Of a stretch of 64,000 nucleotides of DNA, positions 4,731 through 61,896 are shown piece by piece. Position 1 is the stretch's first letter. The number at the start of each line of letters is the position of its first letter. A program made the translations under genes and the position numbers. This DNA is from Oculina patagonica. Taxonomy: Eukaryota. The DNA lies in assembly GCF_052425735.1 (NCBI RefSeq), contig NC_135765.1:32116001-32180000 (forward strand), read 5' to 3'. Under the pieces are notes generated by a model. It was not told the DNA's origin. It searched no databases and saw only the letters and a program-made list of their open reading frames with translations.

Positions 4731-4795
4731 TTCCGAGAAACAAAACTTCATTTCTAAGAAAACTACAAAACCTGTCAAACCGGAAATTTCCGGAA
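4731..4795 (+). promoter_or_regulatory. GAS-GAS-kappaB promoter module of paralogue 2
   Basis: TTCCGAGAA 4731-4739, TTCTAAGAA 4752-4760, palindrome CCGGAAATTTCCGG 4780-4793; ~85 bp upstream of the ATG; conserved in paralogues. Confidence 0.65.
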
Positions 4796-4875
4796 TCCGT
4801 GTCAATCAAGCGGCGGAGGCTGAATCACTTAGACGCCATCTGCATTGTGTTCCTTCAGTTGTCTTTTCTGTTAAA

Positions 4876-7800
4876 ATGTTTTCTTCAAGATACACTCTCG
4901 CCACTGGAGTTTTCATCCTTGTTTTAAGTCAACTTATTTCTTCAAATACAGGTATTTTTTTAATAATGCATATTTTAAAACTTATACTCTGTTATATGAT
5001 TTATGGCTATCGTTGATTATTAGCGCGAAGAACTAAGTCTTTATACACTGAGTGAATTTTTAAGTTCTCTCAGTATATAAAAGACGCGATTTGACGGCCC
5101 GTTTTGTCCGAAATTAATAAGAAAAGAGAACGCAGATAAAAATCGGTTCCACATAAATCCTTGTATTTCAAATGAAGCAAATCGTAGCGCGTTTATTAGC
5201 CAGCTATAACATGTTCATTCGACTGTTGTCAAAGTCCATGTGATGCTTGCCTTGGAGATTTGGTTGAACGCCGAGCCAGCCGTTTGTGTTTTAAAACCCG
5301 CGTCTTCAACGATCTTTCTGTTTTGCCATAGCATGCAATATCGCACTTTTTTGAGTCTTAAATGTTTGCAACTCATTTTGCATATTACGCACGGCCGGTC
5401 AGTGTAAAACGCAGACAGAAGACTGGGGGTAAAATGCAGATTAAGGGTAAATTGCAGACTGCGAACTGCAGAAAGGGGGTAAAATGCAGACCGAGGGTAA
5501 AGTAACGAAATATGAGTCACAAAGCCTTTTTGCCCCGTCGGTTCTATCCGAACGTGAGCAAGCGTTGAAAAGAAAATCGTTCAAAAGTTGCGTGATGGTT
5601 TATTAACGTTTAAAGAACTGCACATCAGGCGATGTTTCGCACGAGCGATCGAGCGATCACGGAGTTGAACTGGTAATAACATAAAATAAATTTTATTCCG
5701 TGGCCACAACTCTTTCAACAGTTTGTAACTGGCACAGATTAACCATTATGCAGTTAGGTAGTTAAAAACGGCTTTCCTTCGATAACTAACCGTCGCGATA
5801 AAACATAAAAAAGCATAAAAAAGGTACAAAACTATTATGTTTAGCGATCTTGTTGTGTCGGCATCGTAAAAAAAATAATATTCAGAAAATCTATAAACCG
5901 TTCAGTTTCATCCGGTTTACAAATGCAGAAGACTTAAAATTGTAGCCTGCGAACAGGCTCCCGAGTGGGGTTTGAGTGGGGTTTTTACGCGAGCGAGGCG
6001 ATTGAAGTGTCACAAAAATGTTGAAAATGCCTTTGCCGGTTAAGGAGGCTCGATGTATTTTTCTAGCCTAAGGGTGGCTGTTTTGAAAATTAAAATTATC
6101 TAGGATGCCAATGTTTGATTTTTGCCAAACTGAATACACCATAATGATCAAATATGACCAAATTTTATTTTTTTACCTGCCACTTAGTCACAAAGGTTAC
6201 CATAGCAACGATTGACGTTTTCTTTTGTTCTCAAACAAGCTTGATTTTCTCGAAATCTAGATTGACAATTGGTATTCATTTTTTTATATGTTTAAGTTTA
6301 GTAGATTGACTAACTGTTGACGTGTTGAAGTGAGCGTTGCTTCCTGAAAAACATAGCAACGTAATGCGTGCAAGAGCTACAATGCCTCTAGATCTAGAGA
6401 AGTAGACCTGTTCTCTGATTACCTACATTTCTGGTTACAGTAAAAAGCCGCGTATAAGAACCTAACATTTAAGAACCTGTTAGGCTAAAATTCTAAAACA
6501 GGTTCTTATTTTCAAAAAAGAAAAAATAATTTTCTCAAAAATATAGAATGAAAAAATATTCTCAAAAATATATTTATAACACAGTCTGTACACATTATAG
6601 TTACAGCATAGTTACAAGATTTATTGGGAATTATAGTGAAGGTTTCAGTATAGTTTTGATTTTAACGGAATCATATTAAAATAGTATAGTATTTTGCTTA
6701 CCGAAGCCTTCAAGAATACTGTTATTGGACATTAAAGAGCAGATCATTAAAAAATTCTACTTTATTTCTTGGACAAAAGTTAAGAACCTAATTAAGAACC
6801 CAGTAAGCCTAATTTTACACTAAATACCATTTATATAAGAACCTGTTTAGGCTAACTTGAAAAAACCTAGGTTCTTATACGCGGGTTTTTACTGTATATT
6901 ACGTATTATAATATCGATAGGAGTCAGCGCGCACTCTAAAATCTATGTTTTATCAGAGTATAAAACATAGAAAAATAATGTGTTATTGTTTTTCGTCAGC
7001 TTTCCTCGAGCTATAGCCACTCGTATCTATCAAGGGCGAATGGAATAATTGTTTTATAAAATCTTTTAATCACTGGACTTTTCACTTTGATGTAAACGAA
7101 GTGAGGCGGGAAAAATTGTGGCGCGGTGTTCACTTCGTGAGTTGAATGAAAGCGAGCGAGAGAGTTTTCTTTCAAAGATTTTCCTCGACAATCTCCTCTT
7201 TATTCGCCTACTCATGCTTGAAAAATATAACAGCAATTAAGGTTTACGGAAAGATTCGAAGCAATAGCTTTTCTAGAAATTATACGCCTTGCGCAAGTTC
7301 AACGAAGCAAGGGAACGGCTGTCATCGAGATTACTATTATGCTTAGACAAAATTGCACTCAGAGTCGGTGAAGCCCGGTGAAGTTTTAATATTTAACAAA
7401 TAAAGAAGCCTAAGCCATGTTTTATAATGTCATAAAACGCGACGAACATTTGAGAACTTTCGCCGTAGTGTCGAAGCGATTCTTTTTTCTTTCTTTCTCA
7501 TTTGGATGTATTGAAGCGAGTGAAGTGATTGGCAGAACTGAAGTGTGAGAGTTTAACAGGATTTGTTCTGCCAATATTTTTATTCCGTGTCAGTTTGCGG
7601 TTTTCGATTCTTGTTTCATAATTAATTTTCCGATTTCAGTGGCTCATAGAATGTTTCTTACTCATCATTAAAATAATGAGTGCAAACAATAAAGCTCTAG
7701 TGAAGAAATTATTCTACAGGACACGAGCGTGGGACAAAGAAAAAATCTGAGTCCCCGACGGGAATCGAACCCATGGCCTCCCAGATACCGGTTGGGCCCT

Positions 7801-10800
7801 CTAACTAACTGAGCTACGTGAGACTTGCTGTGAGCTAGGCCATTTTTACTAGGTTTCGACATTGCTGATCCTAGCAGTATGCAGGACGCGTGTCACTTAT
7901 CAACCTAGTAAAATGGCCTAGCTCACAGCGGGTCTCACGTAGCTCAGTTGGTTAGAGCGCCCAACCGGTATCTGGGAGGCCATGGGTTCGATTGCCGTCG
8001 GAGACTCAGATTTTTTCTTTGTCCCACGCTCGTGTCATGTAGAATAATTTCTTCACTATTTTTCACCGATCTTAAAAATCTACCATCTTTATTATTTACT
8101 ACAAATTTGATGATTTCAACATTGCTGATCCTAGCAGTATGCAGGACGCGTGTCACTTATCAACCTAGTAAAATGGCCTAGCTCACAGCGAGTCTCACGT
8201 AGCTCAGTTGGTTAGAGCGCCCAACCGGTATCTGGGAGGCCATGGGTTCGATTCCCGTCGGGGACTCAAATTTTTTCTTTGTCCCACGCTCGTGTCATGT
8301 AGAATAATTTCTTCACTATTTTTCACCGATCTTAAAAATCTACCATCTTTATTATTCACAATAAAGCTCTATATGACAACATTTTCTACTTCTATCGTGA
8401 GCGATGATTCTTCGGAATTTCTTCAGGTCATGGTTTCGATTCGTGGAAACCAGCGACTAAGGATCGTCACTCAGTCCTAATTTTTTTTTTTTACAAAGAA
8501 AGAATTTACGTTGTAAAACCTACCACGTAGGTCAGCATACATCGTTTCAGGATCACTGGAGGGTGATCCATGAAATATAAATAGTATATATCCCTGGCGG
8601 TCTTCAGTCCAACGTGAGCCTCCAGTTCTGGGAATCAACAGATCCAGATACTCTGGCACGTACATGACACTGAAAATTTCGGTAGACTTCTGGGTTACAA
8701 AAAAGATCAAAAGCCCATCAAAAGCTTGATATAAGCTTTACGAAAAGAGTAAATATAACAGGGAAGTGAAAAAATTCAGTTATTTCTTTCATGGCGTCTC
8801 CTCGCTCAGTTCCGACTTGTTACTCTTCGCCAATGGCCACAGCTGTCGCAAAATGGCTATATATAGAGCGGTTTTCACTTGAGTGTCGAAAGTAGTTTGC
8901 GTTTGCTTTGGTTTTGCATTACTACGCTTAGTGATTGGTTAAAAAATCTCGCGCCACTTTCTTAGCCAATTAGAACTAAAACCAAAACCAATCGTGACTC
9001 GCACGCGCACGCTTTCCCTCGCTTCGTGCCGGCTACATGTATTTGCTTCGAGTTTTGATTGGTTCACTGGATTGTCTGTTTCCTTTGTGATTGGCCGGAG
9101 TAATTACTTTGGTTTTGGTTTTACGACACTCAATTGAAAACTGCTCTATCTCACTCTTCAAGTTGAATAATCTCATTTTCTTCTAGCCGGCGGTTCCTGT
9201 AGCACTGGCTCTCGCAGGACTCTGGATAACGGATGTTCTATCAGTGCGGACTGCAGCACAATCACGTGCAAAATGGATTTTGTTGACGAACCAATCACTT
9301 TTAAGCTCAAGGTAACTCATTGGAAAGATTGTAAAATTTAGCAATATATCTCCTAAACTTTTATCAACAGTTTTGTCGTCGAGAGCACATTTAAAATCTT
9401 TCCAATGAGTTATATTTGAAGTGCATTATCATTCTCGATTTTCAGGAAGGCTTCTCCATCGATAAAATCAACCCCAGCAAAAAGATTAGACATTTAAAAG
9501 TGTTTCGTTTCTACTCTCGAAATATTGATTTTACTTACACTAAATTTCATTTATATTAGACAAGACAGCGCGGTTGACACTTAATTTTCCTTGCCTCTTC
9601 CCATGGCTACAAGTTAACACGTTTAGTCAGAATTTCACGATTTTGGCTAACAGTTATTTGCTTTTATTGCCTGTTAGGTCAATAAGTGTGATGACCCTGT
9701 GAGTGTGACCGCGTCAATGGACGTTCCAGATCTGTTTATTACGTGGTCCCACACTTACACTAGTGACGACATTGAAGAAGTGCCAGGCTTCACCGCATCT
9801 GTGCCTGGTGTCGTTTCTGCTGGCGTGTACGTTCAAGTCGGGCTCACTTCAAACGACGACGAACTGCGTCTAACGGGTGGTGCTTCGTGTAGTGCTCACG
9901 ATCAGTGATCGATGTAACTTCTTTGTGTGCAGCAAAACGCACTTTTGTTACGCCGTGCCCCATAGTTTCACTAACACTTGTTATCTCCTGATTATGAATG
10001 GACTTAACAATGTGTCGTATAAACAACACACAAGAACATCCTTTAGAAAGTTCTAAGAAAGAAGGGCTCGGCAAAGCTAACGATTTTGGAACCACAATAG
10101 AACTTTTTTTTTCAATACGTTACCTCCTAACCATATATATAGTGTCTTCTTAAACTGCCAAGTTGAATTGACAGCGTTCTATGACCTATTTAGACTCGCA
10201 TTTTTACCATTTTACTGACTGAAATAAAACTACCAACTGAAAGGAGGTTTTCACACTTTTTCATTTTGTCACAAATCTTAGCAATGTTAGGATCTGGAAC
10301 GCTCTGCGCAACATTAATATTGCGTACGACGAACGTCATTAATCTAGTCTCTCCATTTAAAGAACTATAAACCAAAGAGAGGACCTAAATGTGACAGCTT
10401 TTACCCTTTCTGAACAGGTAAAGCTACTAGCTGGAGGCGAGATTTTGGGAAAAGCCTTTTATCCTGTGAAGGTGACGGTGATGGAGGGAGATCTGCCAAT
10501 TAATACCAATGATTGTGGTAAGTTATATCAAATGTATGGCTATAACAAAAACTTTCCTTACAAGTTAACAAAAGTGTTACACATATCACCTTAGCCTCTA
10601 ATCTGAAATTAGAGAATATTTACTTCTCTTGGTCTGTCCGTGTGCCACGGTTTTTAGGACCTAAATCCATCGTCGAATGAATCTAGCAAGCTGTATCCTT
10701 TAAATTCCCGTGTGTGCGTTTTTCTTCTCAATCCTCTCCGTCTTATCATCTCTTCAGTAGTATCGAAATTATTTAAGTACGATTTTGGGGGTAATTCTTC

Positions 10801-13648: not shown

Positions 13649-13688
<40 letters not shown>

Positions 13689-24532: not shown

Positions 24533-24597
24533 TTCCGAGAAACAAAAATTCCCTTCTGAGAATACTACAAAACCTGTCAAACCGGAAATTTCCGGAA
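24533..24597 (+). promoter_or_regulatory. GAS-GAS-kappaB promoter module of paralogue 3
   Basis: TTCCGAGAA 24533-24541, TTCTGAGAA 24554-24562, GGAAATTTCC 24584-24593. Confidence 0.65.
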
Positions 24598-24683
24598 TCC
24601 GTGTCAATCAAGCAGCTGAAGCTGAATCATTTAGACGCCAACTGCATAGAGTTGCTTCAGTTGCGTAACTTTCCTCCGTTTAT

Positions 24684-27600
24684 TTGTTTTCTCCAAGACA
24701 TACTCTTGCTACTGGAGTTTTCATTTTTGTTTTGAGCCAACTTATTTCTTCAAACGCAGGTAATTATCTGATGCAGACTTTAAAACTCATACTCTGTATA
24801 AATATTAATTTATGCTCATGGTTAATTATAAGTGCGAAGAATTAAGCTCTCTCAGTATATAAAGGACATGATTTGTAGGTCCAATTTGTTCCAAATTTAT
24901 AAGTGCACAGATAAAAATCGGCCCGATTTTTATCCTTGTAATTCAAATAAAGCAAATCGTACAGTGTAAATTAGCCATAATATTCGACTTCTTTGGTTGT
25001 TGGTGGTAATATGCCTCCTGCCCAACGCCGTAATCGTTGTCAAAGTCCATGTAATGCTTGCTTAGTAGTTTTGACAGCCTTTTTGTGTTTCGAAACCTAG
25101 CACGTCTTCAATTATTTTTCTGTTTTACCACAGTTACAAATTCACTTTTTCTGTTTTACCACAGTTACAAATTCACTTTTCTGTTTGCAACTTATTTTGT
25201 TTACTACGCCAGATTTTGGCTGATCGGCATTACCCAGGTGGGAAAAGACTTGTTGACTGGTTGCTTGTGCCGAGTTTGATCTGTAAACTTTTTTATATTA
25301 TACGTGGCTAATTCTTTCCGAGATACCCTAAACATTTTAGCACCAGATCACTACAGTCAATCGTTGATGGTTTGGTAGGTTTAGTAGCCAACACTTTCTC
25401 GCAGTAATTAATGTCAAGGGAAACCTATTTCGTCGTAGTACCGCTTTGTTTTTCGTTTGCCTTTGTAGGCTGTTGAAAGTTTTCATCATCATTCAAATCA
25501 TAAATGCAAGCAATATTAAAAGCTTTATATAATTAAATTTTCTTGGTTCGTTTAGAGAATGAAATGGAATTTTATATAACAGATTTTTAACACATTATTA
25601 ACAACGTTTAAATTGATAACCCAGTTGACAACTGAGATATGAAAAAAAATTCGCGTGAACGATGATTTCTCGGAATTTCTGCAGGTCATGGTTTCGATTC
25701 GTGGAAATCTCGTCAACTATGTATACGTTTTGTCACCTTTCGAACTTAAAAATTGTGAGCTTCCGAAAAGACTTAATGCAAAAGGAATTGCAAAAGGAAT
25801 TTACACAGTAAAAGGTATTTATAATTATCATGCTTCGGTTCGTGACCATTGGACAAAAATGATTGGAGGGTGGTTCCAAGTTTCAGTCCATCGTTGAACG
25901 TCAATTTCTTGGAATCGATGGATCCAGATACGCATGACCGTACATGACATTCAAAATTTCGTGAGACTTGTAAATGCCTTTTAAAGGCTTGATGTAAACT
26001 TCAGAACTGGGTGAATAGAAGAAATAAGTTAGAGTTTCAATAGTAATTTTTTCCCTGACGTTACTTGCTGCCACTCGCTGCATGAGTTCCGTCTTGTTAC
26101 CCGGGCTATAACCACAATGTTTGGCCAGACTTGAAAGTAATTTTTCAACAGTTTTCATAAAATGGCTTTAGATATCTCACGATTGATAAAATAGTTTCAT
26201 TTTCTTTTAGCCGAGAATGTCGAGTTTGGCGGTTCCTGTAGTACTGGCTCTAGCAGGACTCTTGATGACGGATGTTCTATCAGTGACGACTGCAGCACAA
26301 TCACGTGCAAAATGGATTTTGTTGACAAGCCAATCACATTTAAGCTTGAGGTAATTACTTTACAGCTGAAATCTCTTTAAACGAACATATTTTTGTCATA
26401 ATGATTGAATCGATCTCGTGAATTTTTATTAACATTTTCTTCGTCAAGAGCACATTATTTGTGAAGTTGCATTGATCTCTATTCTCGTTTTTCTGAAAGG
26501 CTTCTCCATCGATAAAATCAACCCCAACAACGGGATTCGCCTGTCTCAAAGTGTTGAATTTTTCTAATCTTGAAACTGTAATTTTTCTTACATTACATTT
26601 CATTTATATCGGACAATATAGTGGTTTATACTTACTTTTCATTGCACTTCTCACGCGGCTATTAAGTAACCCGTTCAGTCAGAATTTCACGATTTCGGCT
26701 AACAGTTATTTACTTGTATTTCCCGTTAGGTCAATAAGTGTGATGACCCAGTGAGTGTGACCGCCTCAATGGATGTTCCAGATCTGTATATCACGTGGTC
26801 CCACACTTACACCAGTGACGACATTGTAGAAGTGCCAGGCTTCACCGCATCCTTGCCTGGTGTCATTTCCGCTGGCGTGTACGTCCAAGTCGGACTCACT
26901 CCAAACGACGACGATCTACGTCTAACGGTTGGTGCTTCGTGTAGTGCTCACGATCTTTACAGTGCACACACAATAACAGCACTTAGAAAGTAAAGAAAAC
27001 ATGCGCGGCAAAGATAACGTTAATTAAATTCGTTAACCACGCTACAACTTACTTTTTTTAATACTTTACCTATATGTTCTCTTCTTGAACTGTTAAAAAA
27101 GTCAAGAGCATTCTACTACCTCCTTTGACTTGCATTTCACTATATCAATTGTTGTAAAGTTCCATGGGCAATTAGTGGGTTTTGGTGCTATTAAAATACT
27201 TGTTTTTATCATTTATTTATACAAAGCACAGCAGTCTAAAAGACCTGGAGCGCAGCGTGCAACATTTCGCGCAATTGCGTGAAAAGTGTCATGAATGACT
27301 TTACTCAGCTCCCTTCTATATATGTACTCGTAATCGATGGCGGGGTGAAAAATCTAACATGCAGTTGTCGTCGTCTTCAAACAGGTTAAGCTACTAGCTG
27401 GAGGTGAGATTTTGGGAAAAGGCGTTTATCCTGTGAAGGTGACGGTGATGGAGGGAGACCTGCCAATTATTACCAACGCGTGTGGCAAGTCTACAAAATT
27501 TCTTTTACAAAATAAACAAAAGTTGTGCATATGTAAGATTAGCTCCAATTCTGAAACTCAGAACCATTTGCTGTCCTTGCTCTTCCTGGAATCACCGTGC

Positions 27601-28585: not shown

Positions 28586-30758
28586 ACCGCTTCCTCCTTT
28601 GCTAAAGCCAATCTTGTACCCAGGGTTTTGATTCATTTTTGATTCCCATGCTAGACAAATGCGACTCGCTGTTCAATTGGAATGGAAGCCCTGGGTATGA
28701 TATTGTCGAGACTAAACGCTGGTGCGCAGTGTGAAAGTAATTGCTCCTGTAGGCTGGTTTTGGCGTTTCTGATCATGATCGTGACACTATAAAAGGTAAA
28801 AAAAAAACAGCTGTTCTAGAGTCAATTTTAGCCAATACTTTTCAGGGCGCAAATCAATGATGTTCGGCTTAATTTTTCTTAATATCCGTTGAGGTCGATC
28901 CGCCGACAACAAAGTTATATTTCTGATAAAGGCGCTTTCACACAGCGCGCCAGTGTTTATAACCTCAAATCGAACTGTCAATGCTAAAGAGATAATAGAA
29001 AGAGCTTTAGCCATGTAAGGTAGACAAACTGGTAGATAGTTTCCTTTGCTGCCGTTACTTGGATTGTCACACACTAGCATTGCGTGACGACTAATTGGCC
29101 TCCCTTGTTGTGAAGTGCATAGATGTAGTTAAGGTGTGCGCCATAATGAAGATTAATCAGACAGATTTTTTGTAGTTCTGTAGCCCCCTAGGCAGATGCA
29201 CGCGTTCCTCCCAAACCTTTTATTTCCTTATGTAGCACGTAAAAAAAACAGGCATTTTTTGTTGTCGATCGTATCAGGATTGGATTTCTCGTGCCAGTCT
29301 TCTCCTCCACTGAGGCTCTCAAGGCAAAGTTATAAAAGAGCGTGATCAAAGGGAGATACGCGTGATTCATGTACAGGAGAATTACTCCGTGAGCTCAAGC
29401 ACTTTATTTTACAAGAATACAAAAGAAGCCTTTGTTGATAAGTGTTTATCGATGTAATAAATTGCCACAAATGTTTTGAAGATAGATTAGTGAGTCTCGC
29501 GGTCTTTTTTCTAAAGGAAGTATTGTTATTAGGTTAATGGACTATACTTCCGTGTACTGTCAGTTTGTGTTGATGATTGATAAAATTAAAAATAAAAAAA
29601 AGGTGCACGACAAAACTGTAACAAGAATTAATTTTCTACTTTACGAGCTTTAACCACAAAGCTTGCATTTTTTTTTTCGTGTAGTAAACTCTGATACAGG
29701 TGTGTTTCATGCCAAGTATATAAGTCGCGCGAAACTTAGGATTGATTGGGAAAATAAGTGTCACTTTTGAATTTTTCCAGAGCCGCTTCTTAGCGTCGGG
29801 ACTTTCGCACGAGAGAATGCCCGATTCCCTCATGGCGCGCGTCTGCAGGGAATCATGGTAGTTGTGTTCATCGTTGCTTAGTCTTGCGCATGATTTGATC
29901 ATGGATGGTTTGATGAATACAACTACCATGATAACTTGCAGGCCCGCGCCATAGAGGAAATCGGACATTCAAAGTTTCTCGTGCCCAGCACCTCCTGGCT
30001 GAGATAATCAAGCATTTCTAGAGACGAAAATGGAGAGCTCACTGAGCGATACCTATAGAGCGCTCTTGAACCCTTTTCTGATTAGACAAAAATTAAATTA
30101 TTCTGGTTTGATTTATCCTTTCATTTTTTTTTTGATCTGCAAGTACGTACCAAACTAAAGGATCAAGATTGCTTGAATGAATAAGTACAATTTTACACCA
30201 GAATTACAGTGGTTTTATTTTTATGCAAAGAGTAGTTTATGGCTAACGTTTCAACAGGATATAGACCTATCATTAACAAGTTAGGGCCCAGTTCTCTGGA
30301 CAAATGGGCTCATTGATGATTGACAGAAGTTACTTCACCTAATCATCCCTAGTAATTATGTCAACTAACAAAGGTTTTGACGATAATTTATGTACATATT
30401 AGAGGAGCTGCTGAATAATTTTGGTGGTAAATTGGAAATTACCGGTTTGACTGCTTTTGTGGGCGTCTTATAAACAAAGTTTTGTTTCTTGGAATTTTAC
30501 ATTAACATAAAGCAATATTTACGCCAGAGTCGTTCCCAGTATGAAATGCCTAGACAATTGCACATGGGGCACAGAAGGTTCGTTCAGCCTTCCCTCGCAT
30601 CTACTTTGACATAACTCTTATCCTCCCCCCAGTTTCCAAAATGAATAGAAACAGGAGAACGTCTAGCAGTAATCCATTAAAAAAATTGATGCTGTTACGT
30701 CCTTTTTGCGTTACAGTGTTGTAAGTTTAAGAGAGATTGTGCTGCGTCTAGATTTGTA

Positions 30759-40264: not shown

Positions 40265-41758
40265 TAATAATTAATAATAATAATAATAATAATATTTCGA
40301 ATAACAAAATGTTTTGTGAAACATTTGAGAAGAAAAATAAGCGATAGGAAAATAGAACGACGTTTCGATGACGCCATGTCATCATTATCAAGTTAAAATT
40401 ATAATACGGAGTTCATGCTTATATAGTGATCTAGGGTGTGATAATATATTAGCATATTGCAAACCCGGAATGAATATGCCATTCCTGCTTCACATCAACT
40501 TTCACCCTTGGTTATGATCCGAGGCAAGACAGTTATAAAATATTTTTTCCTCGTACATATATTTTGCTCAAAAATTTCGTTTAAACTCCAATGACAAGAA
40601 ATCTTAGTCGCTAAGGTTTCAAAGAATAGCCAATTCCAAGAAAATCAACTCTAACCGTCAGCAAAACATTTCAGTTCAACCTCATTCCTCATTTATTAAT
40701 TTTACAGTTATAAGTTCATTGCTTTTCCTAAAAAAATTGATTACATTTCACCGCAAAGAAGTAGAAAATTCAAGTTATAGAGAGCTTAATTTTTCGCAAA
40801 CCATGGAGTCTAAAAAAAAACTTCTAGAGTCTCGTACGGTCATGCTCAGTCGAACCCATCGATTTCGAAGCATGTTCAATTTTTAACGTTTCTTCACAGG
40901 GAGACCGCAACAGTTGAGAAATTGGATAAATTGATAAAAGAATATCACTCACATGGCTCCGTTCGTTCCCTATGTTAGTTTTCTTTATGCGCAGTCGATA
41001 GCTTATAATTACTGTTGTCGTATGCTAAGCTGTCTTGTGCGCGAGAGGAAGTCAGTTATGCTAATTTTCTCACTTTTTTTTCTAGGAAACAGCAGTTCCT
41101 CGCAAAACCAAATCTTGCATACTTCGCAACAGTTTTAAAGAGAATGCTATTATATCGTCTTATATTCGACAACCACAACCGACCAAACTGAGAAACTCAT
41201 TCGGTAATAGAATTAATCGGCAACAAGAGAAGAAAGCTTAAAGCTCTTGCTATTCCGAACCACCGACGTTTACAAAATGGTCGTCGGCAATATCATTTGG
41301 CTTTTCAATTTGAACTGCTTACGGTCTGCTTAAAAATATAAGCCATGTACGTATTGCTACAAGCTATAGCGGAGAGGAAAGACATAACAAACTGCGTATT
41401 AACCGTCTGCGATTTAAAGGCGTATATATAAAGCGTTTACCCATTTTGTTTGCGAGGTGTAACTATTTCTCACTGAAACATACGATAAAGGTTTGTTACT
41501 CATTGTTAATGATCACTTTGCGATGTCGAGTTGAAGATGAAGACATCAGAAAATTTTATGCTGTGTCATCATTTTTGTATCTTATCTTATGCAGTGTCAT
41601 CACTTTTGCAACCATTGCTCGGCAATGAATCATCTCTATATGCTTGAAATTAAACATCTTCCAACTGAGGTTAATACATAACTGTTCTTACCTTTCGCAT
41701 ACGTTAGCGAAGAGCTTGTCAGAAGCAAAACAATGCAAGGAAGAAACGTCCAGTTCAT
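33012..41758 (-). CDS. Cluster paralogue 4, divergent, 7 exons (~253 aa), with two extra 20-aa stalk exons; intact
   Basis: Exons 41758-41692 (MNWTFLPCIVLLLTSSSLTYAK), 37853-37717, 37208-36996, 36560-36464, 35028-34969, 34361-34302, 33139-33012 (WSNSIPWRALMITGIVISCCICCGCCCCCCCRRGFFVTEINT*). All introns GT-AG and frame-compatible. Confidence 0.78.
34140..35100. repeat. Local tandem duplication (~670-bp period) carrying the stalk exons of paralogue 4
   Basis: 34140-34440 and 34815-35100 are homologous (catcgttaattgtta..catatacgcgcggatg..aaagtttgtttaaatttggtacaaaagcttc). Confidence 0.8.
38120..39645. mobile_element. Nested LINE 3' fragments (- strand 38120-38760; + strand 38930-39645)
   Basis: Post-RT motifs LRFETGRY..IPRNERLCNFC, LPHLEYC, YGDRSFSVIAPKLWNDL and YDLRG..LWNNLP. 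Confidence 0.7.
40005..40292 (+). mobile_element. Severely 5'-truncated R4/Dong-like non-LTR element inside an (AAT)n microsatellite
   Basis: LQKITLLGTAHILRGVLS* C-terminus plus a short 3'UTR, with (AAT)n tracts on both sides. Confidence 0.6.
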
Positions 41759-42495
41759 TTTGACAATCGCACGGTCTTGCTGGGGCTCAAAGGCTTGCTT
41801 TCCTCGCTCAATTGTTGTGTCACAACCGTGATACTTTGTCATCACAAGACCATTCCGAAGATTCTCGATTTATCGTCAATTTCCGTAATAGCAGGTATAC
41901 TGGACGCTGATTGGTCGTCATTTCTCGTGTTGACGATAAACGGGACAGCGATCGATACTGATTTGAAACGAGGTGGCAATCGGGCAGCAATCGGTACTTC
42001 AAATGGGCTCGCCTACAGACTGGAATGTTCGAAGTTAATTGATCGGGTTCCGACCAACCATCAGATGATAATTTCAGATGCCATTGCTCGCGTTGAGACG
42101 TTTTTGCAAGTTCTCGGTTCTTTCTATCATGTCTTATTTTACAATAAGAAGTGTGAATTGGCACAGCTTTCGCGGATTGTACTTTCTTGGTCAGCGATAC
42201 AAATATTTTACTGTTGCTGCGACTTTACGAACTTCCAAGTAGTTGAAAAATCGTTCGTTTCCTTTCAGTTGCGGAGCCGGAAATCAGTCTTGTCTTCGAA
42301 GTCAAGCAACAATTTCAAGAGGCAGAATGAATTCCTTTTGTAGTGACGAAGCAACTCTTTCGGGAGGCAGAATCAACAAATACATGAAGGTATTTGTTTC
42401 CAGAAAGTTCTCTGACCTATTGTTTACAAGTAGCCTTGCGGTTTGCCAAATTTGTTTATTATTATTGTTTCCGTGGGTTGGCTGTCAATTCCTTG

Positions 42496-45445: not shown

Positions 45446-48400
45446 TCAGCAGCAGCATTTAATGCAGCAGTAGCAAAGGCAACAGGAAACTAATACCGAA
45501 AGAACCCCTCCACCGATCGTAAGCCACAAATCAAATGACCCTAAACGAAAGAACGAATATAAGCTCAGTTTGATGTTGAACCACATTAATTAATTGAATT
45601 TATCACAGCATATTCAGTCAATTTTATATTGTACAGAGCTACCTTTAACCCAAGGAAACCGTAAATGATAGCAAGGTTGCAGTGTTGCATAAGAAAGAGA
45701 AAAATCGTTTAACTGGGTAATGTTTTAAAGACTTTTACTTACCACAGTCAATCGACAGGAATCCATCTACCACAGTCACATTTACGGGATACATCTGTGC
45801 CCCAAAAATCTTCCCTCCAGCTAGGAGGTTCACCTGTTAAAATACGGGAACTGCTATCAAGTATCTCGCCGTCATGTTCTATGAATAACAACTGATCAAT
45901 AAACCCGATAAATTATAAAAAAATATATTACTTTGTAGAAATATAACTATTTTAAGCAGCATCAGTTTTCACTTCAGACAGCTGTAAAAGCAATAATCAT
46001 GTCCTGCATCCTGGAGTTTTGTCCAGTTGTGGGGAGCTCAATGCTGAACAGTGAGTCATGTGCATTCAAGTCATTCAGTTACGTGTTAAAAGAAATAGTG
46101 TCACTGATGTGCGGTGAACATTGCTCCGGATTCGCAGAGATGCCCGGTGTCGCTTTCTCTTCAAAGAAATTAAACTTTTAAGTAAGTCTTAAACACAGCC
46201 TTCAAGAATAGCAGGGGCTATTGTTTTAAATTTTTATTATGTTATACTCGTAGTTAGGTAGGTAGGTAGGTAGGTAGGTAGGGGCGTACGTAGGTAGGTA
46301 CGTAGGCAGTTTAGTAGGTAGGTAGTTTTTTCATTGATGGAAATACCGGGTTAAAATAATTTCGTTCTGCGGGGTGGGAAATGGGAGGGGGAGGGGATCC
46401 CCCCCGCGCGCGCGCTGCATCGGAATGGAGTGACGTAGTGGAATTTTGAATGACTGTACATTGAATCCAACACGAAGCACTTACCGTTACATTCAGTTTT
46501 TCATCGCCAGGCCGGACTTGAACTTATACACCTGCAGTTCCGATACTGGTCATGGAAACAGTGAAACCTGGTATTGCTATAATGCCGTCACTTGTAAAAG
46601 TATGTGACCAATTGATATTCAGATCAGGAACGTTTATCCCGACGGTTGCACTCACGCCATCACACTCGTTGACCTGACAGGCAACAAAACTAGTATAACA
46701 TTAAAAGGAAAAGGTTGAGTCACGGTCAGTTGAGTTTAAAACATTATTTTCTATTCAAAGTGTTGAATGTTTAGTTTGATGACATAATTCTCAAAAGGTG
46801 CTGCACCATGAATACCTTCAATGTAAATATAACAGTTTTTCCGACAAAATCCATTTTGCAGGTGAGTTTCGTGCAATCAGCACTGATGCTGCATCCTTTA
46901 TCGACTGTCTCGGGAGAGTTTTCACAAGTACCATTCAACTTTAGAAGAGGCTTAGCTAAAAGAAAAAAACAAAAGTACTTATACAGCTAATTCGAGAAAG
47001 GTTGTCGTACTGAGAAGCACAAAGTGCACGCGACAAGACCGAAAGGTGGTCTAGGTGTTCACTGGAATTTTGCATATCGGCCTAGAGGAAAAATTGTATT
47101 TTTGCACAAGCTACTGAAAAGGCCTCTCAGGAGGCCTTTTCAGTAGCTTTACTTTTACTTTCGCATGTCTTTGAGTTCTGAAAATTCTTCTAAACTTCAG
47201 CATATCACTATTCAACTTGTTAAGTTTTTGACTTTTTAATGAAATGCGTGTTGCATTTTGTCACTAGACTCAATTTTGCAATATTTGCTGCCAAGCCCAA
47301 GAGGAGGATGTTCCAAAGGTGCGTCCTTTAACGCGACTGGGTGGTGGGGTAGATGTGGAGGAGAAAGTAATTTGCCGCAAAAAAAAAAAAAATTCAATAG
47401 CGTTTTCTGAATCAAAGTAAGGACCCCTCTAATTAAAAAAAAAACCCGATCCACTCCTGTATGGCATTATTTAATAAAAAACTGCCAAAGAACTTATGTT
47501 TATATTTTAATTTTAAATTTAGCTTCAACCTTTCTGTTGTTTTTAACTTAAACATTCTTGATGTACTAACATTTCTGTTGTATTATAGCGCTTATTAATA
47601 TTCTTCGTCACCTACCTAGTGGCTTTCTATATAAGTCAGTGCATTATATTATCTTTGTCAGGTTTGTCTTGTAATATATATACGAATTGAAATATTACGT
47701 TTACTTTTTTGTTGGTCGGTTGTTCTTGCTTATACTTACATTTTAAGTTTGCGAGATGTTCCTTCGAGTAGTTTGTCGACGGCAAAGATATCTATATCAG
47801 TTTTAGATCTGACTTTGATTTTAATCTAGCCTAACACATGTCGCCTGTAAAAGCAGTCATCATTTTTAAATCTGGCCTTGACACACTTCAAAAAACATTT
47901 GTTATCGTGCTAAAAGACAGTTGAGGGGGCGATATAAAGACTTATACTTGCCACATTGAAACCGCAGGTCTCCCTCTATTACAGTCACTTTCACAGGAAA
48001 ATCGCCTTTTCCCAAAACCTTAGTTCCAGCTAGAACCCTCGCCTATTGAAAGAGGACAAGAACTGTCAGATTTCTCGTCCTCTCGTTCGTTGGAAGGAAT
48101 GACGTCATTCATAAAGCCTATAGCACGTTACATCGTTTAGCATAGATAACGACGTCAGTCTTGAATTCTTGAAAAGGTGTTTTTCCTAGTTGAGTATGTT
48201 TTGAATTTGTAATGATACAAATTGAACTGTTACGAGTCAAACGAGTTCGTAGGACACCTGTTAATGTCACTCCACAGTTGAAGTCACGACGACGATGAAG
48301 GGAAATGTGCTCAACAAAGAGTCAGAAAAGGTTTACTAATTTTTTGGTGTCGTTGTAAGGGGTTGCGAAGACGTAATAGACGAAGATGACGAACACAAAG

Positions 48401-51400
48401 GCGAGCGAGCGCATTAAAAGCAAAATAGAAGAAAAAGAGGACTGCTCGCATTCTGAAGACGTAGGCGTTCAGCCAATTCTTTAGAGATTTGAACTAAACA
48501 AGACGCTTATATGCGTGCTGTTTTGACGGAACACTGCCTAATTTTATTGGTGTATAGCCACTCGCTTTCCAAGACATAAGACAGACGTCATCACATTCGT
48601 GAAATTTTGGGGTTATGATGTAACTAAAGTGTATTTCGCAGCGCAAACGCTTTGGGAAACACTTTTAACGTGGCTTTTAACCGTTTTAGGCTATGTAGAG
48701 CTTTACGACTTCAAAAGTATATCTGAAGACTGTATGTCGAATCCAACACTAACCGTTACATGCAGTTTGTCATCGATAGGACTGAGCTCGACTTGAACGA
48801 AAACGCCTGTATCAATGATGCCATGGAAGGATGTAGTGAAACCTGGCACTTGTACAATTTCGTTACTGGTGTAAACATGGGACCAAGTGATGTGCAAATC
48901 AGGAACTTCCACTGTGGTAGTTGCGCTCACCTTGTCACCACATTTATTGACCTCACGGACAACAAAATCAATATCACATTTAGTAAGGGAAAGATTGATT
49001 CACATGTGTTGCATCTTTTTCTATTCAAAGTGTTGTACAGTAAAACCCACATAAGTTAGCCTAAGAAGGTTCCTAATACCGAATTTAATAAAATAAGCAC
49101 CTGTTTCAAATTTTAGGCTAAATGTTAGGTTTTAATGTAATGGGGGTCTCAATGGAAAGTCTAAGCCTAGCAGGTTCGTTATCACCAGGTTATTATGTGC
49201 GGGGTTTGCTGCACGTTGTGATGTCTAGCTGTTACTTTAGATCTGTTTCGTGTAAGTACTGAGGTTGATCAGAGTTAACTCCGGGTTGATTCACAAAGAC
49301 CAATCCCTAACGTCCTCGTTCGTGGGAGGTGGGCAACGGTGGAGTAGGGGACTGCCTGTCAGGGTGAAGTACAGTGGGACTTAGGTCCCGGGGCCGCTAC
49401 GGTAGCTGTGAAGGCCTGGCAGGAACCCTGAACAAGCTGGCAAATAGGGGCTATGGCAAGTCTGCAGTAGGCTAGTCACCCCCTCAGACTCAACATGTGA
49501 CTACAGAAACCGAAACAGAAGAGGCCTTATGCGTCCAATGGCGCGAAAAGGATCGATGATGATGATTATTCACAAATGAGTTGTTGTCCACGATGAAGCA
49601 ATTTCAACTGTTCGTTTCTGTCAGTATACTACGATCTCTACTACTGTACATGCACTGATTACCTTTAACTTAAATATTATAGGCATCTCCACAAACTTCA
49701 TTTCACACTTGATTGTGCTGCAGTCGCTACTGATGCTGCATCCATTCGCGAGAGTCTTGACAGAGCCATCGCAAGTGCCGTTGAGCTTTGCAGTCTCAGC
49801 TAAAAAAATGATTAATAATTTCAATATTTCAATATTCCCCTTGTTTAAAAACATCACTGAACATTTTCACTCACAAACACAATCACTTGAATTACTTTAT
49901 TGTTGAACGGCTGAACTGATGGCTTCAATATTCCTCCCGGCCGACCCCACCTGCTACCTAACTGCAAGACTGCTAAATGATACAGGACCAGAATAGAAAA
50001 GTAATGGTTAAGAAAACTTCCTTCTGTTTTATAGCACTCCCTTTGTTGTTGTTTTTTTACGAAATAAAAGAAAATTCTAATTTTCGGTCTTGTCGCAGGA
50101 TTCTCAATATTGAGTAGTCCAGTCCCTGAACTCTCTCTTCCGCGCCCTATATAGGGGCTGAACCCCTATAAAGAACGCGCGCGGAAGAGAGACATTGAGT
50201 CTTTAATAGATTTTTCCTAGCAAATTTAACGTTGCTGTATGCTTGCGAAAAAATTTTGAAAAACTGTTTAAAATTTAATGAAAGAAATCTTAGTCGCCAA
50301 GGTTTAAAATTTCCTAGAAAATCAACGCTAAAGTAAAACATTTTCCCGCTCAACCTCAGTTATTAATTTTACCCTTATAAGTCCATTTTTTCCCTAAAGA
50401 ATTGGTAATATTTCACCCGCAAAGAAGTACAAAAATTCAGTTATACAGAGCTTTTAATTTTTTTTTCGCAAACCAGAAATTCTAACCAAACTTTTAGTGT
50501 CTCGTACAGTCATGCGTAGCCGAACTCATCGATTCCGAAGGATGTTGAATTCTTAAAATGATTTTCAATTTTTTTTTAACTTTTGCAGACCCGAAACGAA
50601 TATGCCATTCGTGCTTCACAGGTCAACTTTCACCCTTTGTTAAGGTCCGAAGAAAGAACCTATAAAATATTTTTCTCTCGTAAAATTTATTTTGCTGTAT
50701 GCTTCTGAAATAAACTTCTAAAAATTTAATGACAAGAAATCTTAGTCGCCGAGGTTTCAGAGAACTGGCCGTAAAATTCCAAGAAAATAAACAGTAACCG
50801 TCGGCAAAACATTTTTCCCGCTCAATTTCAGTTATTTATTTTACCGTTATAAGTTCATACTTTTCCTAAAGAAATGATAAAAGAAGTAGAAATGTCAGGT
50901 GTATAAAGCTTAATTTTTCACAAACCAGAAAGTCTAACAAAACTTCGATAATCCGACGCAAACAATCATGCGTAGCCGTACCTATCGACTCCGAAGGATT
51001 TTTAATTTTTAATGATTTTCAAAAGTTTTTAAAAACTTCTGCAGACCCGAAACAAAAATGCCATTCGGAATTCCTGCTTTACAGATCAACTTCTACCTTT
51101 GGTTAACTTATAATCCGAGGCAAGAACTTATAAAAAAGTTATCCCTGGTATATTTATTTTGCTATGAAATTTCGAAAAAAAGTTGTAAAAATTTATGACA
51201 AGAAATCCGGGGTCTCTGACTTTCCAAAGAAATTCCAAGAAAATCAACGCTACTCAATGCGCTGCGCTATACTTTCGAAAAAAACTTTTAAAAAATTAAT
51301 GACAAGAAAACTTTAATAGTCGCCGAAGTTTTTAAACAAACGCAAATTCCAGGAAAATCGAAGCTAACCGTTGGCAAAACATTTTCCCGTTCAACCTTAG

Positions 51401-52481
51401 TTATTTATTTTACGTTTATAAGTCCATTACTTTTCCTAAGGAATTAATTACATTTCAACGTAAAGAAGTAAAAAATTCAGGTACACAGAGCTTAAATTTT
51501 CGCAAACCAGAAAGTGAAACACAAAACTCCCAGAGTCTCGAAAGGTCAGGTTTCGCCAAACCCATCGATTCCGAAGAATGTTTAATTTTTAATGATTTTT
51601 TTTTTTTAAATAAAAACTTTTGCAGACCCGCAAGGAATATACTATTCCTACTTCACAGATCAACTTCCACCCTTGCTTACCATCCGAGGAAAGAACTTAT
51701 AAAAGAATTTTGTCTCGCATTTTGCCGTATACTTTATTTTAATAACAAGAAATATTAGTCGCCGAAGTTTCAAACAAAATAGCAAATTCCAAGAAAATCA
51801 TCGCTAACCGTCGGCACAAGATAAAAGTACATTAATTTTCCAAAGGAATTGATACATTTCACCGCAAAGAAGTAGAAAATTCACGTATATAGAACTTAAT
51901 TTTTCTCAAAACAGAAAGTCTAACAAACTCGGCGAGAGCCTAATAAGGTCATGGTTAGCCAAATCCAGCGATTTCGGATGTTTAATTTTTAATGATTTTT
52001 TTCTTAAGTTTTTAAATTTTGCAGAACCGAAATGAATATGCCACCTTTGGTTGTGATCGAAGGAATGATCTTAAAAAGATTTTTCCCTTGTAAATATGTT
52101 TTGCAGTCTAGTTTCTAAATATGAAAACGTTTAAATTAAAAGTTTAATGACAAGAAACTTTAGTCGCCGATCGCGAGGTTTCCACGACATGGTTAAATTA
52201 CAAGAAAATCAACGCTGGCGGAGGCAAATCATTTTCCGTCGTACTTTTTTCAATTTTTTGCTTTAGCTGTAAAGAATAAGTTGCATTTCACCGACAAAAT
52301 GGAGCTTTTAAGTATATAAAGCGCTACTTTTCACACTTATAATAAATCATAACCATAAATTGTTACTCCAGCGAGTGAGTTTTTAAGAAGTAAGGAAATT
52401 ACCTGCAACTGAAGAAATTACTTGGCTTAAAACAAGAATAAAAACTCCAGTGGCAAGTCCAGTGACTCCTGGCGCAGTCAT
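45446..52481 (-). CDS. Cluster paralogue 5 with two tandem ectodomain modules, 8 exons; in-frame TAA in module 2 (pseudogene or module-skipping isoform)
   Basis: Exons 52481-52403 (signal), 49799-49663, 48951-48754, 48042-47952 (GC donor), 46955-46816, 46673-46485 (GVYVQV>GV*VQV, stop at 46524-46526), 45833-45743, 45540-45446 (TM, ends CCLCYCCIKCCC*). Confidence 0.75.
49270..49566 (+). mobile_element. Non-autonomous RTE-like retroelement with a decayed HDV-like ribozyme at its 5' end
   Basis: tcccta-acg-TCCTCGTT-cgt-gggaggt-gg-gcaacggt-ggag-taggg at the 5' end; gccttatgcgtcc..(gat)n 3' end. Confidence 0.5.
50200..52330. repeat. Degenerate tandem array (~450-580-bp unit, ~4-5 copies) in intron 1 of paralogue 5
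   Basis: Recurrent gacaagaaatcttagtcgcc, accgcaaagaagtagaaaattca and gcagacccgaaa motifs; single related units at ~40460-40900 and ~61280-61640. Confidence 0.75.
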
Positions 52482-52577
52482 TTTCACAGAGGAAAGACAA
52501 GAAGCTACCATATGCAGATGGCGCCTCCGCCGCTGTTAAACCCTTCAGCTTCGACAACTTGATTTCTGAGGGATTCT

Positions 52578-52638
52578 GGAAATTTCCGGTTTGACTGGTT
52601 TTGAAGCATTCTCCAAAACGAAGCTTTGTTTCTTGAAA
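52578..52638 (-). promoter_or_regulatory. kappaB site with degenerate GAS pair, paralogue 5
   Basis: GGAAATTTCC 52578-52587; the GAS positions have decayed (ttctccaaa, ttcttgaaa). Confidence 0.5.
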
Positions 52639-58500: not shown

Positions 58501-61500
58501 ACCCAGTGTCTAAATAATCAAAGATTCTTGGACGAATAACATCTGTCTATCCCACCACTTAAAGTTCTAAACAGTGGTCCATGTTGGATCAATGAAACGT
58601 AACTTTATTTGATGTGATCAGAGCACCAACGCTAGTCTATACATTTGAAAGCAAGTTTTGTTGAAAACTTCGCAACCTAATTTTCAGCTATACCCCAATT
58701 CAACTTAAAATTTCGTATTCTCCTATGTGTCCTCACTAATGTGAATTTCGCATTGTTAACTGGGATTAATTATTTAGAATTCTCGTAATTTGCCTAAAAG
58801 TTGTTACGACTACTTTTTTATCGCAGCTTGATTTATTCATGTTTGCACCAAGAATGTTGAGAAAATCAATTCATTTTTTTTGTCCTGATTAAATTTTGTA
58901 TGTCATGCATCACATGCGGAGAAATTATCATTCTAAAAGCCTTTCTCATTTTATGTGTAAATCAGTTTCAAAGAAATGTTAAACGTTACTTTGTTTTACT
59001 TTTTTACTAGCTTTTATTGACCTTTCAAAGTTACTCGATTTTAAAAAAACTGTAATGTACGATTCTAGACGGGTAAGTACCATTTGGGATCACACATATT
59101 TATTTCTTCTTCTCTTATTTAGCAATTTTTACTGATATTAATTTACATCAATTCGATGAATTTCAATATACCGTTGTTTACAATTCTTACATGTTTCTGT
59201 TGAAGTCTAGTCTCTCTCGCAGCCGTTTTAAGTGTCGTCACTTAACGCTCCTCCCCACAAACGGCCGTTTGTGGGGAGGAGCGCTGCGTGACGACACTAA
59301 AAACGGCTGGCCCCGAGGAAGACTAGTTAAAGTCTAGCTCTTTGCAATTTATGAATAAGGTGTGCTCACCTCCAAGATCGCGAGATTCCCATAGCTAGGC
59401 AAAGTAGCTACCGCGAGAGCAAAAGCAATTTTAGCAGTGGAACGTTGATTTAACGAACCTCTATATAACGAAGTCCTCGGTATAAAGGCGAACGATATTC
59501 TTCAGCCCGGCCAAAGTGACAAAAAGTGTATGGAGGAGGACCTCGATATAACGAAATCCTCGTTATCACGAACACAATCCGAAAGCCCAAACGTAAAATG
59601 TCCCTCGATATAACGAAAACGTGTCAACACGCAACAAAAGATGAATGCGGAACACACCAACAAGGATGAAAATCCTTTAATCCTGTAACACTGAGAGAAC
59701 AAGTTCATCAAGTACATATGTCCATATCAATGTGCATATATTATACATTACAAATCTTATTTTCAGAAATCGTTAATATCCGGGTGCGCAGTGCAACGTA
59801 ACAGGGGTAAAAACTGATTAGCTATACCTCGATATAACGACCATTTTGGTTGTTTTTCCGAAACTTCGTTATATCGAAGAACCCTTGTTGTAACGAACAA
59901 ATTTTCACAGTCCCTTCGCGCTTCGTTAAATCGAGGTTTTTACTGTAAAAGCTGTCCCTGCTAACATAAATGTAAAACTATCTACGATCGCGAATCGACA
60001 CTATGCTCTTGTAACGACAAAGAAAGTCGTAGCCAAGCTTAACGAAGTGGGTATCTAAGCTCGTTAAAATCAGTTAAAATCGATTCACTCCAGCCACAAA
60101 AATTGCAGCAAACAGCCTGTTTTTCATCAGTTTCTTCCTTCCCTTCTTGCAGTCAGATGACTTGTAGACTTAATTTCTTCTTCTGTAAATTCCCTAAAAA
60201 CACGAGGCACGTTACCATGATTTTTCTAGTTGATCGCCTGATCTATCAAATGATTTTTCTTACACTGACGAATGTATACGTACTTGTGTAAGAATTTAAA
60301 TGCAGTCTTCTGAGAGATAAAACTGAAATAAATCACTTTTTGTGGGGTTTTTTTCCTTCTGATATTTGCACATCCTACAAAAATTAAATTATTTCCCTCA
60401 TTGACGTGCCTAGTGAAAGATATTTACCTCGCCGCTTGCAGGTCCGCTTCGCGGCTCGGTAGATATCCACCACTATCCACCCCATTGCGGGGAATAAATT
60501 CAAATAATTGTTTAATATAAGCCGGCTTCTAGAAGTTTCCAAAATCAATAAAGTTTAGCAGATAAAAATTCTAATCAAAATTACAAGTTTACTTTCCAGC
60601 CTTTTCAGAATAGCGAACTCTTCAAAATGATTTCACACTGCGCAGATTAGCGCTATCAATGAGCTTTTTCGATTCTTGCTCAGTATGTCACGGATTACAT
60701 TTAAAAACTAGAAAAATAGACTTGAATGTGCCAATTTTTAAAGCAGAACAAAATCCTAAAGAATGATGCAAATAACATGCTGGTTTAACTGCATGTTTAA
60801 TAAAAAATTTCGCTTCGGTTAGACAATGGGTTACCTTGTTGTCTAACAGCTAAAGTGATAAAAGTTCGCTTTGGTTAAATCATGTATCCGAGACAGGAAT
60901 GAAAAGAAAGGAAACACAAAGGTAGATCTCAAGCATTAATAATAAAAACCTTCCATAACTTCTCGAAACTTCCATAATTTTGCAGCAGTGATCGTTCTGC
61001 GAGTAATGCTGTCAAAAAAAATAAATTAAAATTCGAGGTCTACCTTCTGTTTACCTTCTTTATGAAGTTTATATCAAGCTTTAATAGTTATTTCGACGAG
61101 CTTATAATCGTTTTTGTCACCAGATCTCTAACTAACGAACCTTCGAGAATAATCACGTACGGTCAAGTCTGCGGTATCCGCCATCGATTCCAAGAATTCG
61201 AGACTTATTGAAAAGGCGCGGAAGGATATTGGTATCTATTTTCCACGGAACAACTTTTACCAATCGTGCAAAAACTAATCAAAATGCTTTAAAGAATTAA
61301 CACATACAAATTCTTTCTCTTGTAACTTTCGTTTGCTCTTTCTTGCGAAGAAACTATAAAGGTTTTCTAAAACGAATAATTAGTCGCCGTTTGAGACGTT
61401 TGAGGTTTCCACGAAATCCCGACATGTGCCAAATTCCGAGAAATTATCTCTCATGCTAATATTCTTCTTTGAATCTTATTATTTTCCACTTTCAGTTACC

Positions 61501-61743
61501 AATTGTTAACGGTTCTTTAACTTTTCTCATAAAGAATTCAGTAACAACATTTCACCGCAAGGAAGAAGACAATTCAGATGTCCGCTAAAGAGCTTTTACA
61601 ATTTTTGCACTAATAATTAATGCATAACCATAAATTACAACAAGTTTGCATCAAATAAAAACCCTACCTGCAGTTGAAGAAAATAGCTGGCTTATAACAA
61701 GAACGAAAACTCCTGTGGCAAAAGCGTGTCGTGGAGAAAACAT
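55514..61743 (-). CDS. Cluster paralogue 6, 5 exons, intact (~250 aa): signal peptide, Cys ectodomain, TM, C8 tract, short tail
   Basis: Exons 61743-61668 (MFSPRHAFATGVFVLVISQLFSSTA), 58326-58178, 57657-57460, 56105-56006, 55743-55514. All introns GT-AG; total 753 nt in frame. Confidence 0.88.
55832..55995. mobile_element. Foldback hairpin MITE next to the exon-4 donor of paralogue 6
   Basis: Long inverted repeat tacacggatctagagtttcag../..ctgaaactctggatccgtgta; a second copy at ~62806-62970. Confidence 0.8.
56392..57255 (-). mobile_element. LINE (CR1/L2-like) 3' portion in intron 3 of paralogue 6
   Basis: LYYALVYPFLTYC..LQKKAIRII..HGYNTR..GAKIWN ORF; 3' stem-loop and (GTT)n tail. Confidence 0.85.
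59435..59945. mobile_element. pogo/mariner-type MITE
   Basis: cagtggaacgttgatttaacgaa / ttcgttaaatcgaggttttactg ends; internal cctcgatataacg repeats. Confidence 0.65.
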
Positions 61744-61836
61744 TTTAACAGAGCAAACTCAGCAAAGATAACACATTACAATATGCAGATAGCGTCTCAG
61801 TGATCCAACCCACGCGAATTAATTGACATATGTTCT

Positions 61837-61896
61837 GGAAAATTCCGGTTTGACCGGTTTTGTAGTGTTCTCAGAAAAAAGTTTTGTTTCTCGGAA
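61837..61896 (-). promoter_or_regulatory. GAS-GAS-kappaB promoter module of paralogue 6
   Basis: GGAAAATTCC 61837-61846, TTCTCAGAA 61868-61876, TTCTCGGAA 61888-61896. Confidence 0.65.

Follow-up and report, generated by a model that had tools for sequence, protein, structure and literature searches.

What keeps a short block of motifs nearly constant in front of several genes of a tandem cluster, and which factors might read it? This question was raised by a 64,000-nucleotide stretch of the genome of the coral Oculina patagonica (the window), in which self-comparison revealed six paralogous multi-exon genes in tandem, copies 1-3 on the forward strand and copies 4-6 on the reverse strand. An initial annotation had noticed two gamma-activated sites (GAS, the STAT-type palindrome) followed by a kappaB-like palindrome upstream of four of these genes, and had proposed a composite STAT and NF-kB enhancer. 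We found strong comparative support for the tandem GAS half of this proposal, in its arms, position, gap and retention, whereas the NF-kB half was not supported as stated. The reading we put forward, to which we give about even chances, is a maintained promoter module that would combine a STAT dimer pair with an ETS/NFAT-type GGAA element.

In copies 2, 3 and 6, two TTCNNNGAA sites whose starts are 20-21 bp (about two turns of the helix) apart are followed by GGAAWWTTCC, at positions that agreed to the base with those first reported (Table 1). In these copies, the module occupies the stretch from 153 to 85 bp before the ATG; relative to the RNA contig 5′ end, it is 64-125 bp upstream. Copy 5 was correctly described as keeping the palindrome with a decayed GAS pair, both sites having changed from TTC to TTT. 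An orphan promoter remnant, with no exon 1 downstream, has a decayed second GAS site and a decayed palindrome (GGTAATTTCC). The aberrant paralogue copy 5 and this remnant, which have both lost arms, serve as natural controls. The window contained seven matches to GGAAAWTTCC, compared with 0.44 expected from shuffled sequence, and four GAS pairs with a 10-15 bp gap, compared with 0.06 expected from simulation. As the copies are paralogues, this excess reflects shared descent. Therefore, conservation relative to the flanks is the real test.

We compared homologous loci of Orbicella, Nematostella, Porites, Pocillopora, Acropora, Actinia, Hydractinia and Stylophora, and added three distinct coral promoters from metagenome contigs. 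A pattern scan of such contigs returned 119 loci, only 5 of them coral (L034, L041, L070, L071 and L122) and the rest chance matches to an 18-mer. The three added promoters had been recovered by a pattern over 4774-4791, so this stretch was left out of the statistics. Alignments and anchored extracts revealed the same module in front of the homologous exon 1 in other species, and it was retained in seven further promoters of five further genera that had been retrieved independently of its sequence. Between Oculina and Orbicella, Pocillopora or Porites, identity was 70-79% over the module, compared with 66% over the exon 1 coding sequence, 39% between the module and the ATG and 33% upstream of the module. 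Because the module is more conserved than the coding exon and the exon more than the flanks, the block is a conserved non-coding island and not a by-product of recent duplication. In our reading, selection maintains this block of 65-80 bp as a proximal promoter module that belongs to one subfamily of the gene family.

The constraint was then resolved column by column. The test set comprised copy 5, two promoters each of Orbicella and Pocillopora, one of Porites and the three metagenome promoters, scored at the columns invariant in copies 2, 3 and 6. At the 12 arm positions, 94% of cells hold the Oculina base, compared with 74% at the neighboring columns (Mann-Whitney p = 9e-4). When all 118 possible xxxNNNxxx placements were ranked for conservation, the proximal GAS site came first and the distal one second. 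On a maximum-likelihood tree, parsimony counted 0.5 steps per column in the arms, 2.7 in the centres and 2.5-2.6 elsewhere in the promoter (p = 1e-4 and 4e-6). The earlier observation that TTC and GAA are kept was thus borne out, the arms changing about five times less than the centres and spacers. The comparison of motif with flank, which the initial annotation had suggested, favored the GAS arms on promoters outside the set it had used. By this evidence, the paired sites are under selection.

Across eight genera, we counted 27 intact TTCNNNGAA sites in 14 complete pairs, plus five single sites. All but two of the intact sites read TTCYNRGAA. The statement that the three central bases vary holds for the middle base, which takes all four letters, but in nearly all intact sites examined position 4 is restricted to pyrimidines and position 6 to purines. 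The proximal site has eight different centres between fixed arms. The gaps in the 14 pairs were 10, 11 (four pairs), 12 (five), 13 (two), 14 and 15 bp; 9 of the 14 fall at 11-12 bp. In 10 of 13 aligned promoters, the proximal site is followed by the AAAC[CA]GGAA core at a distance of 24-25 bp. Promoters that could not be aligned with Oculina were searched with an alignment-free regular expression for pairs near the ATG, within about 150 bp. Pairs were found in the promoter of the Nematostella homologue (L003 9903), at -99 and -75, in a second Acropora paralogue (Acropora digitifera, L125 9850), in two Stylophora promoters (L128 1828 and 4777) and in a third Pocillopora promoter (L124 18415). 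Outside these promoters, about 290 kb of retrieved coral and anemone DNA held a single pair with a gap of 10-15 bp, the chance expectation being 0.06 per 64 kb. From this distribution, we conclude that paired STAT-type sites are kept across robust and complex corals and Nematostella.

STAT is the best candidate binder because of the fit to TTCYNRGAA, the gap of 11-12 bp and the single STAT gene in Nematostella (PMC8713801). In Oculina, the STAT gene lies outside the window. Mammalian STAT5 tetramer sites (consensus TTCNNNGAA) have a commonest gap of about 11-12 bp, with secondary peaks at 6-7 and 16-17 bp (PMC4990345). The coral pair shares with them the promoter-proximal TTCN3GAA tandem, the pyrimidine at position 4, the purine at position 6 and the preferred gap. 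Unlike them, it belongs to a non-bilaterian with a single STAT and an incomplete set of JAKs and cytokine receptors. In the proposed mechanism, each TTCYNRGAA palindrome would bind one dimer of the single cnidarian STAT, and the two dimers, placed on one side of the helix, would cooperate as they do at STAT tetramer sites. About 16 bp further downstream, GTCAAAC[C/A]GGAA would most likely be bound by an ETS- or NFAT-type factor, and in robust corals this element is extended into GGAAWWTTCC and then CC[A/G]GAA. We infer which proteins bind and that the genes respond to signals; the STAT half of the composite reading is well supported by the comparative evidence and the geometry. A stronger claim is that the pair works as a genuine STAT tetramer-type response element and was present by the time of the hexacorallian ancestor; we consider it less likely than not. 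If it were true, this would be the first direct STAT target module that can be identified outside Bilateria, and the poly-cysteine surface family described below would be the output of a cytokine-like or stress pathway without the full bilaterian JAK and receptor set.

The GGAA element contains the deepest conservation. The block AAACC-N-GTCAAACCGGAA is invariant in Oculina and near-invariant in Orbicella. The invariant bases GTCAAAC[C/A]GGAA start 8 bp before the palindrome and include only its left half. CCGGAA becomes CAGGAA in Porites and Acropora; one or the other is present in 12 of 13 aligned promoters, and Pocillopora promoter b has CTGGAA. The GGAA core itself does not vary in 12 of the 13. 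The ETS consensus is (A/C)(C/A)GGAA(G/A)T and the NFAT core is (A/T)GGAAA. The alternation of CCGGAAA and CAGGAAA between clades is what the ETS consensus allows, whereas the 5′ flank GTCAAAC exceeds a typical ETS footprint. GTCAAAC[C/A]GGAA looks ETS- or NFAT-like. Just downstream of the module, on the reverse strand, TGATTGAC, which we take to be a PBX-MEIS-like octamer, is kept in copies 2 and 3 (4801-4808 and 24603-24610), both Orbicella copies, L034, L122 and Pocillopora b. A full TGATTGACAG was also seen upstream of the pair in an Acropora promoter (L125 9790-9799). One metagenome coral contig (L070 1235-1266) has CTGTCAAACCGGAAATTTCCAGAAC without GAS sites and without a recognisable family exon 1, so the GGAA/palindrome element may occur at other genes.

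The palindrome has a different history. Among the promoters found independently of its sequence, the four Oculina copies, Orbicella a and Stylophora a carry it intact. In Orbicella b it is one base shorter, in Pocillopora it carries a 3-bp insertion or is mutated (right half TACC), and in the Porites and Acropora promoters compared it is absent. The right half-site is kept in Stylophora a, but it is missing or shifted in Orbicella b, in both Pocillopora promoters a and b, in Porites and in Acropora 1 and 2. This distribution makes the palindrome a robust-coral feature that was lost several times, and on the same comparison it is younger than the GAS pair.

The initial annotation took the palindrome for a Rel/NF-kB site in a composite enhancer of the kind seen at inducible immune genes; on this view, a coral NF-kB homodimer would bind it and cooperate with STAT. 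Vertebrates have inducible immune genes with composite GAS and kappaB promoters, and in Drosophila the Turandot genes depend on JAK-STAT and Relish input together. The coral promoters resemble them in having STAT-type sites next to a Rel-homology-type palindrome, within about 60 bp and close to the transcription start. They differ in that GGAAWWTTCC is of Rel/NFAT type, not of the p50 type expected for cnidarian NF-kB, and is restricted to one lineage. The exact palindrome in the promoters where it is intact, with only two central bases varying (AT, TT or AA), favors NF-kB, and the shorter version in Orbicella b is GGGATTTCC on the other strand, still kappaB-like. NF-kB is also active in immune and heat responses of coral and anemone (PMC13042239). 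However, the two half-sites are not conserved together in orthologous promoters, the right one not being kept in Pocillopora, Porites and Acropora. The constraint is strongest on the 5′ side, where the invariant bases reach 8 bp beyond the palindrome and outside any kappaB site. Against the consensus GGGRNWYYCC, GGAAATTTCC and GGAAAATTCC score 9/10, with A at position 3 on both strands, so that the third G is missing; GGAA half-sites are preferred by p65 and c-Rel, and GGGG by p50 (PMC4493129). The site is of Rel type, whereas the NF-kB of anemones resembles p50 in its binding and differs from c-Rel and RelA, the Rel subfamily being absent from cnidarians (PMC5700166). The bases of the palindrome can also be read as an ETS, NFAT, CP2-type or heat-shock element. 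We consider it unlikely that NF-kB reads the palindrome.

Several observations weigh against a STAT pair with a GGAA element. The pair is absent from Acropora promoter 2 and from Hydractinia, Actinia has a single site only, and Oculina copy 4 and an Orbicella subfamily (L002) have no pair upstream of the start. The spacers are also well conserved (AAACC and GTCAAAC). The sequences compared are related paralogues and orthologues, so the p-values overstate their independence. JAK-STAT signaling is without functional study in non-bilaterians, and cnidarians miss one unit of the pathway, according to a 2024 review (PMC11193209). The response to cyclic GMP-AMP was unaltered by knockdown of nvSTAT (PMC8713801). 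Finally, the context of the distal site is longer and nearly fixed, AATTCCGAGAAAC, so a factor with a longer footprint than STAT could bind there. This last point leads to a second alternative, that a non-STAT factor occupies the TTCYNRGAA pair, for example an uncharacterised dimeric factor of cnidarians or a reader of the AATTCCGAGAAAC context. The distal centre CGA or CAA and the flanking A/AAC are indeed kept in most species, and such a factor would also sit easily with the lack of studies on STAT function in cnidarians (PMC11193209). The proximal site speaks the other way, since eight centres between fixed arms are expected of a palindromic half-site reader like STAT, and the gap fits STAT tetramer geometry (PMC4990345). 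We judge a non-STAT binder to be quite unlikely. As a separate observation, the Orbicella subfamily that lacks the upstream module (L002 4353, 10291 and 11386) carries a GAS pair with a gap of 18 bp in intron 1, some 290 bp after each of three duplicated exon-1 units.

The palindrome and its next five bases can also be read as nGAAn nTTCn nGAAn, a site for an HSF trimer, with heat-inducible genes and the GAS-like sites as a separate input. Compared with the heat-shock element nGAAnnTTCnnGAAn, an exact three-unit match, GAAnnTTCnnGAA, is present in the four Oculina copies, Orbicella a, Stylophora a, L122 and L041, and all three variable columns of the Oculina 15-mer fall on n positions. Intron 1 of copy 6 holds three more perfect three-unit matches in a cluster of 620 bp (60527-61149, a stretch without tandem repeat, open reading frame or RNA coverage), whereas 1.16 are expected for the whole window. 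At least three contiguous inverted nGAAn units are thus present in Oculina, but they are not conserved as a three-unit array in orthologues. The match is broken by spacing in Orbicella b, by GTA in L034, and also in both aligned Pocillopora promoters, Porites and Acropora. Promoters that have lost the palindrome still retain CC[A/G]GAA, an indication that it is an independent element. HSF targets are typically cytosolic chaperones, and the coral product is a membrane protein of the secretory pathway. We regard the heat-shock reading as improbable. For the palindrome itself, then, NF-kB is an unlikely binder and HSF at most as likely, and the larger part of the probability falls to ETS, NFAT or another GGAA reader; for the extension in robust corals, Rel/NF-kB, an NFAT dimer, an HSF trimer and a CP2-type protein are all candidates on sequence. 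Another perfect match of the GAAnnTTCnnGAA type was noted some 560 bp before the copy 4 ATG, at 42398-42410.

The weakest alternative, that the motifs have no function of their own and were conserved through recent duplication or gene conversion, draws on the approximately 82% identity of copies 2 and 3 over promoter and exon 1 and on paralogy as the explanation of the motif excess in the window, but it is hardly credible given the independently found promoters of five other genera, a cross-species identity that exceeds coding exon 1 between flanks at 33-39%, substitutions that avoid the arms, and a divergence of the foreign loci that excludes contaminant Oculina DNA as their source.

Some other readings were dropped. 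Rfam had no match at the module, which left no case for a non-coding RNA, and the module always accompanies exon 1 of the gene, which does not suit a transposon origin. The spacing of GAGAAACAAAAC is wrong for an IRF site or interferon-stimulated response element, and the second half of the Grainyhead site AACCGGTT is absent. The extra AAACCGGAA matches at 2561 in the window and at L071 8529 were attributed to chance.

STAT is present in cnidarians, and a short cis-element with a defined position and a clear mark of conservation makes the question of its targets and activation experimentally concrete. The element is common to reef corals and the genetically tractable Nematostella. In addition, an uncharacterised, tandemly expanding family of surface proteins supplies candidate signal-responsive coral genes, and immune and heat responses are of practical concern in corals.

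Table 1. Positions of the promoter module and of associated exons in the window.
Feature	Position	Strand	Remark
Copy 2 distal GAS-type palindrome TTCCGAGAA	4731..4739	+	intact at this position in 10/13 aligned promoters
Copy 2 proximal GAS-type palindrome TTCTAAGAA	4752..4760	+	gap of 12 bp after the distal site
Copy 2 block AAACC-N-GTCAAACCGGAA with GGAA core	4768..4785	+	most deeply conserved; overlaps left half of palindrome
Copy 2 palindrome GGAAATTTCC	4782..4791	.	kappaB site of the initial annotation
Copy 2 three-unit heat-shock element reading, GAAnnTTCnnGAA	4783..4795	+	overlaps palindrome bases
TGATTGAC octamer, presumably PBX-MEIS-like	4801..4808	-	just downstream of copy 2 module
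Copy 2 exon 1	4855..4951	+	ATG 4876; donor after 4951; protein P0097
Copy 3 module	24533..24593	+	TTCCGAGAA 24533-24541; TTCTGAGAA 24554-24562; GGAATTTCC palindrome GGAAATTTCC 24584-24593
Orphan promoter remnant (fifth)	30434..30597	-	TTCCAAGAA kept at 30494-30486
Copy 5 module	52578..52638	-	palindrome intact 52578-52587; decayed GAS sites TTTCAAGAA 52630-52638 and TTTGGAGAA 52609-52617
Copy 6 exon 1 coding sequence	61743-61668	-	ATG 61743
Copy 6 module	61837..61896	-	TTCCGAGAA 61896-61888; TTCTGAGAA 61876-61868; palindrome GGAATTTTCC 61846-61837

The genes behind these promoters encode a product of about 245 amino acids, with a signal peptide, a cysteine-containing ectodomain of about 140 amino acids, a transmembrane helix, a cysteine run and a short tail ending in VPMxPL. 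Protein entries of Oculina patagonica map onto the window with 100% identity (exon 3 profile search and homology). Profile and homology searches found members in stony corals, anemones (in Nematostella, LOC5509047 and LOC5509027) and Hydractinia, and none outside cnidarians. As predicted from these features, the product is a type I membrane protein with a poly-cysteine stretch, and the family is cnidarian-specific. Pfam searches with the exons and full proteins gave nothing above the cut-off, and an ESM Atlas search with exon 3 was uninformative. An AlphaFold model of moderate confidence with a beta-rich ectodomain (predicted local distance difference test score 74) had no match at E<0.01 in the PDB and Swiss-Prot AlphaFold libraries. 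No paper came up when the literature was searched for the LOC identifiers of homologues.

RNA contigs that join 4951 to 9187 (GT..AG) and 9311 to 9678 show copy 2 to be transcribed and spliced. One contig has its 5′ end at 4855, where the surrounding TCAGT is initiator-like. No reads of the PolyA runs X23 and X24 fell on this copy. For copy 6, contigs from the RNA runs confirmed the splice between exons 2 and 3, and they did not cover exon 1 or the transcription start. Exon 1 of copy 3 (24640-24775) has no ATG, with ATTTG where AATG is expected. In the NCBI isoform P0096, exons 1-2 come from copy 2 (4876-9311) and exons 3-5 from copy 3 (26730-28582), about 17 kb downstream. With this junction and the lost ATG, copy 3 may be expressed from the promoter of copy 2.

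Copy 5 (P0001) also differs in its body, having two successive exon-3-like modules at 46400-49900 as well as decayed GAS arms. Its intron 1 (50200-52240) is occupied by a tandem array of units of about 440-460 bp that are 70-77% identical. The array holds several TTCCAAGAA sites, and one related unit is found near copy 4 (40457-40896). In intron 1 of copy 2, an inverted repeat with arms 96% identical (7698-8365) contains two tRNA-like matches, at 7756-7818 on the reverse strand and 8198-8260 on the forward strand. It is probably a pair of tRNA-derived short interspersed nuclear elements. Just upstream of copy 2 exon 2, a sharp-edged element at 8863-9149 reaches a depth of 45,000-90,000 in the RNA-run contigs and is 83% identical to 33279-33573; it is probably an abundant transcribed interspersed repeat.

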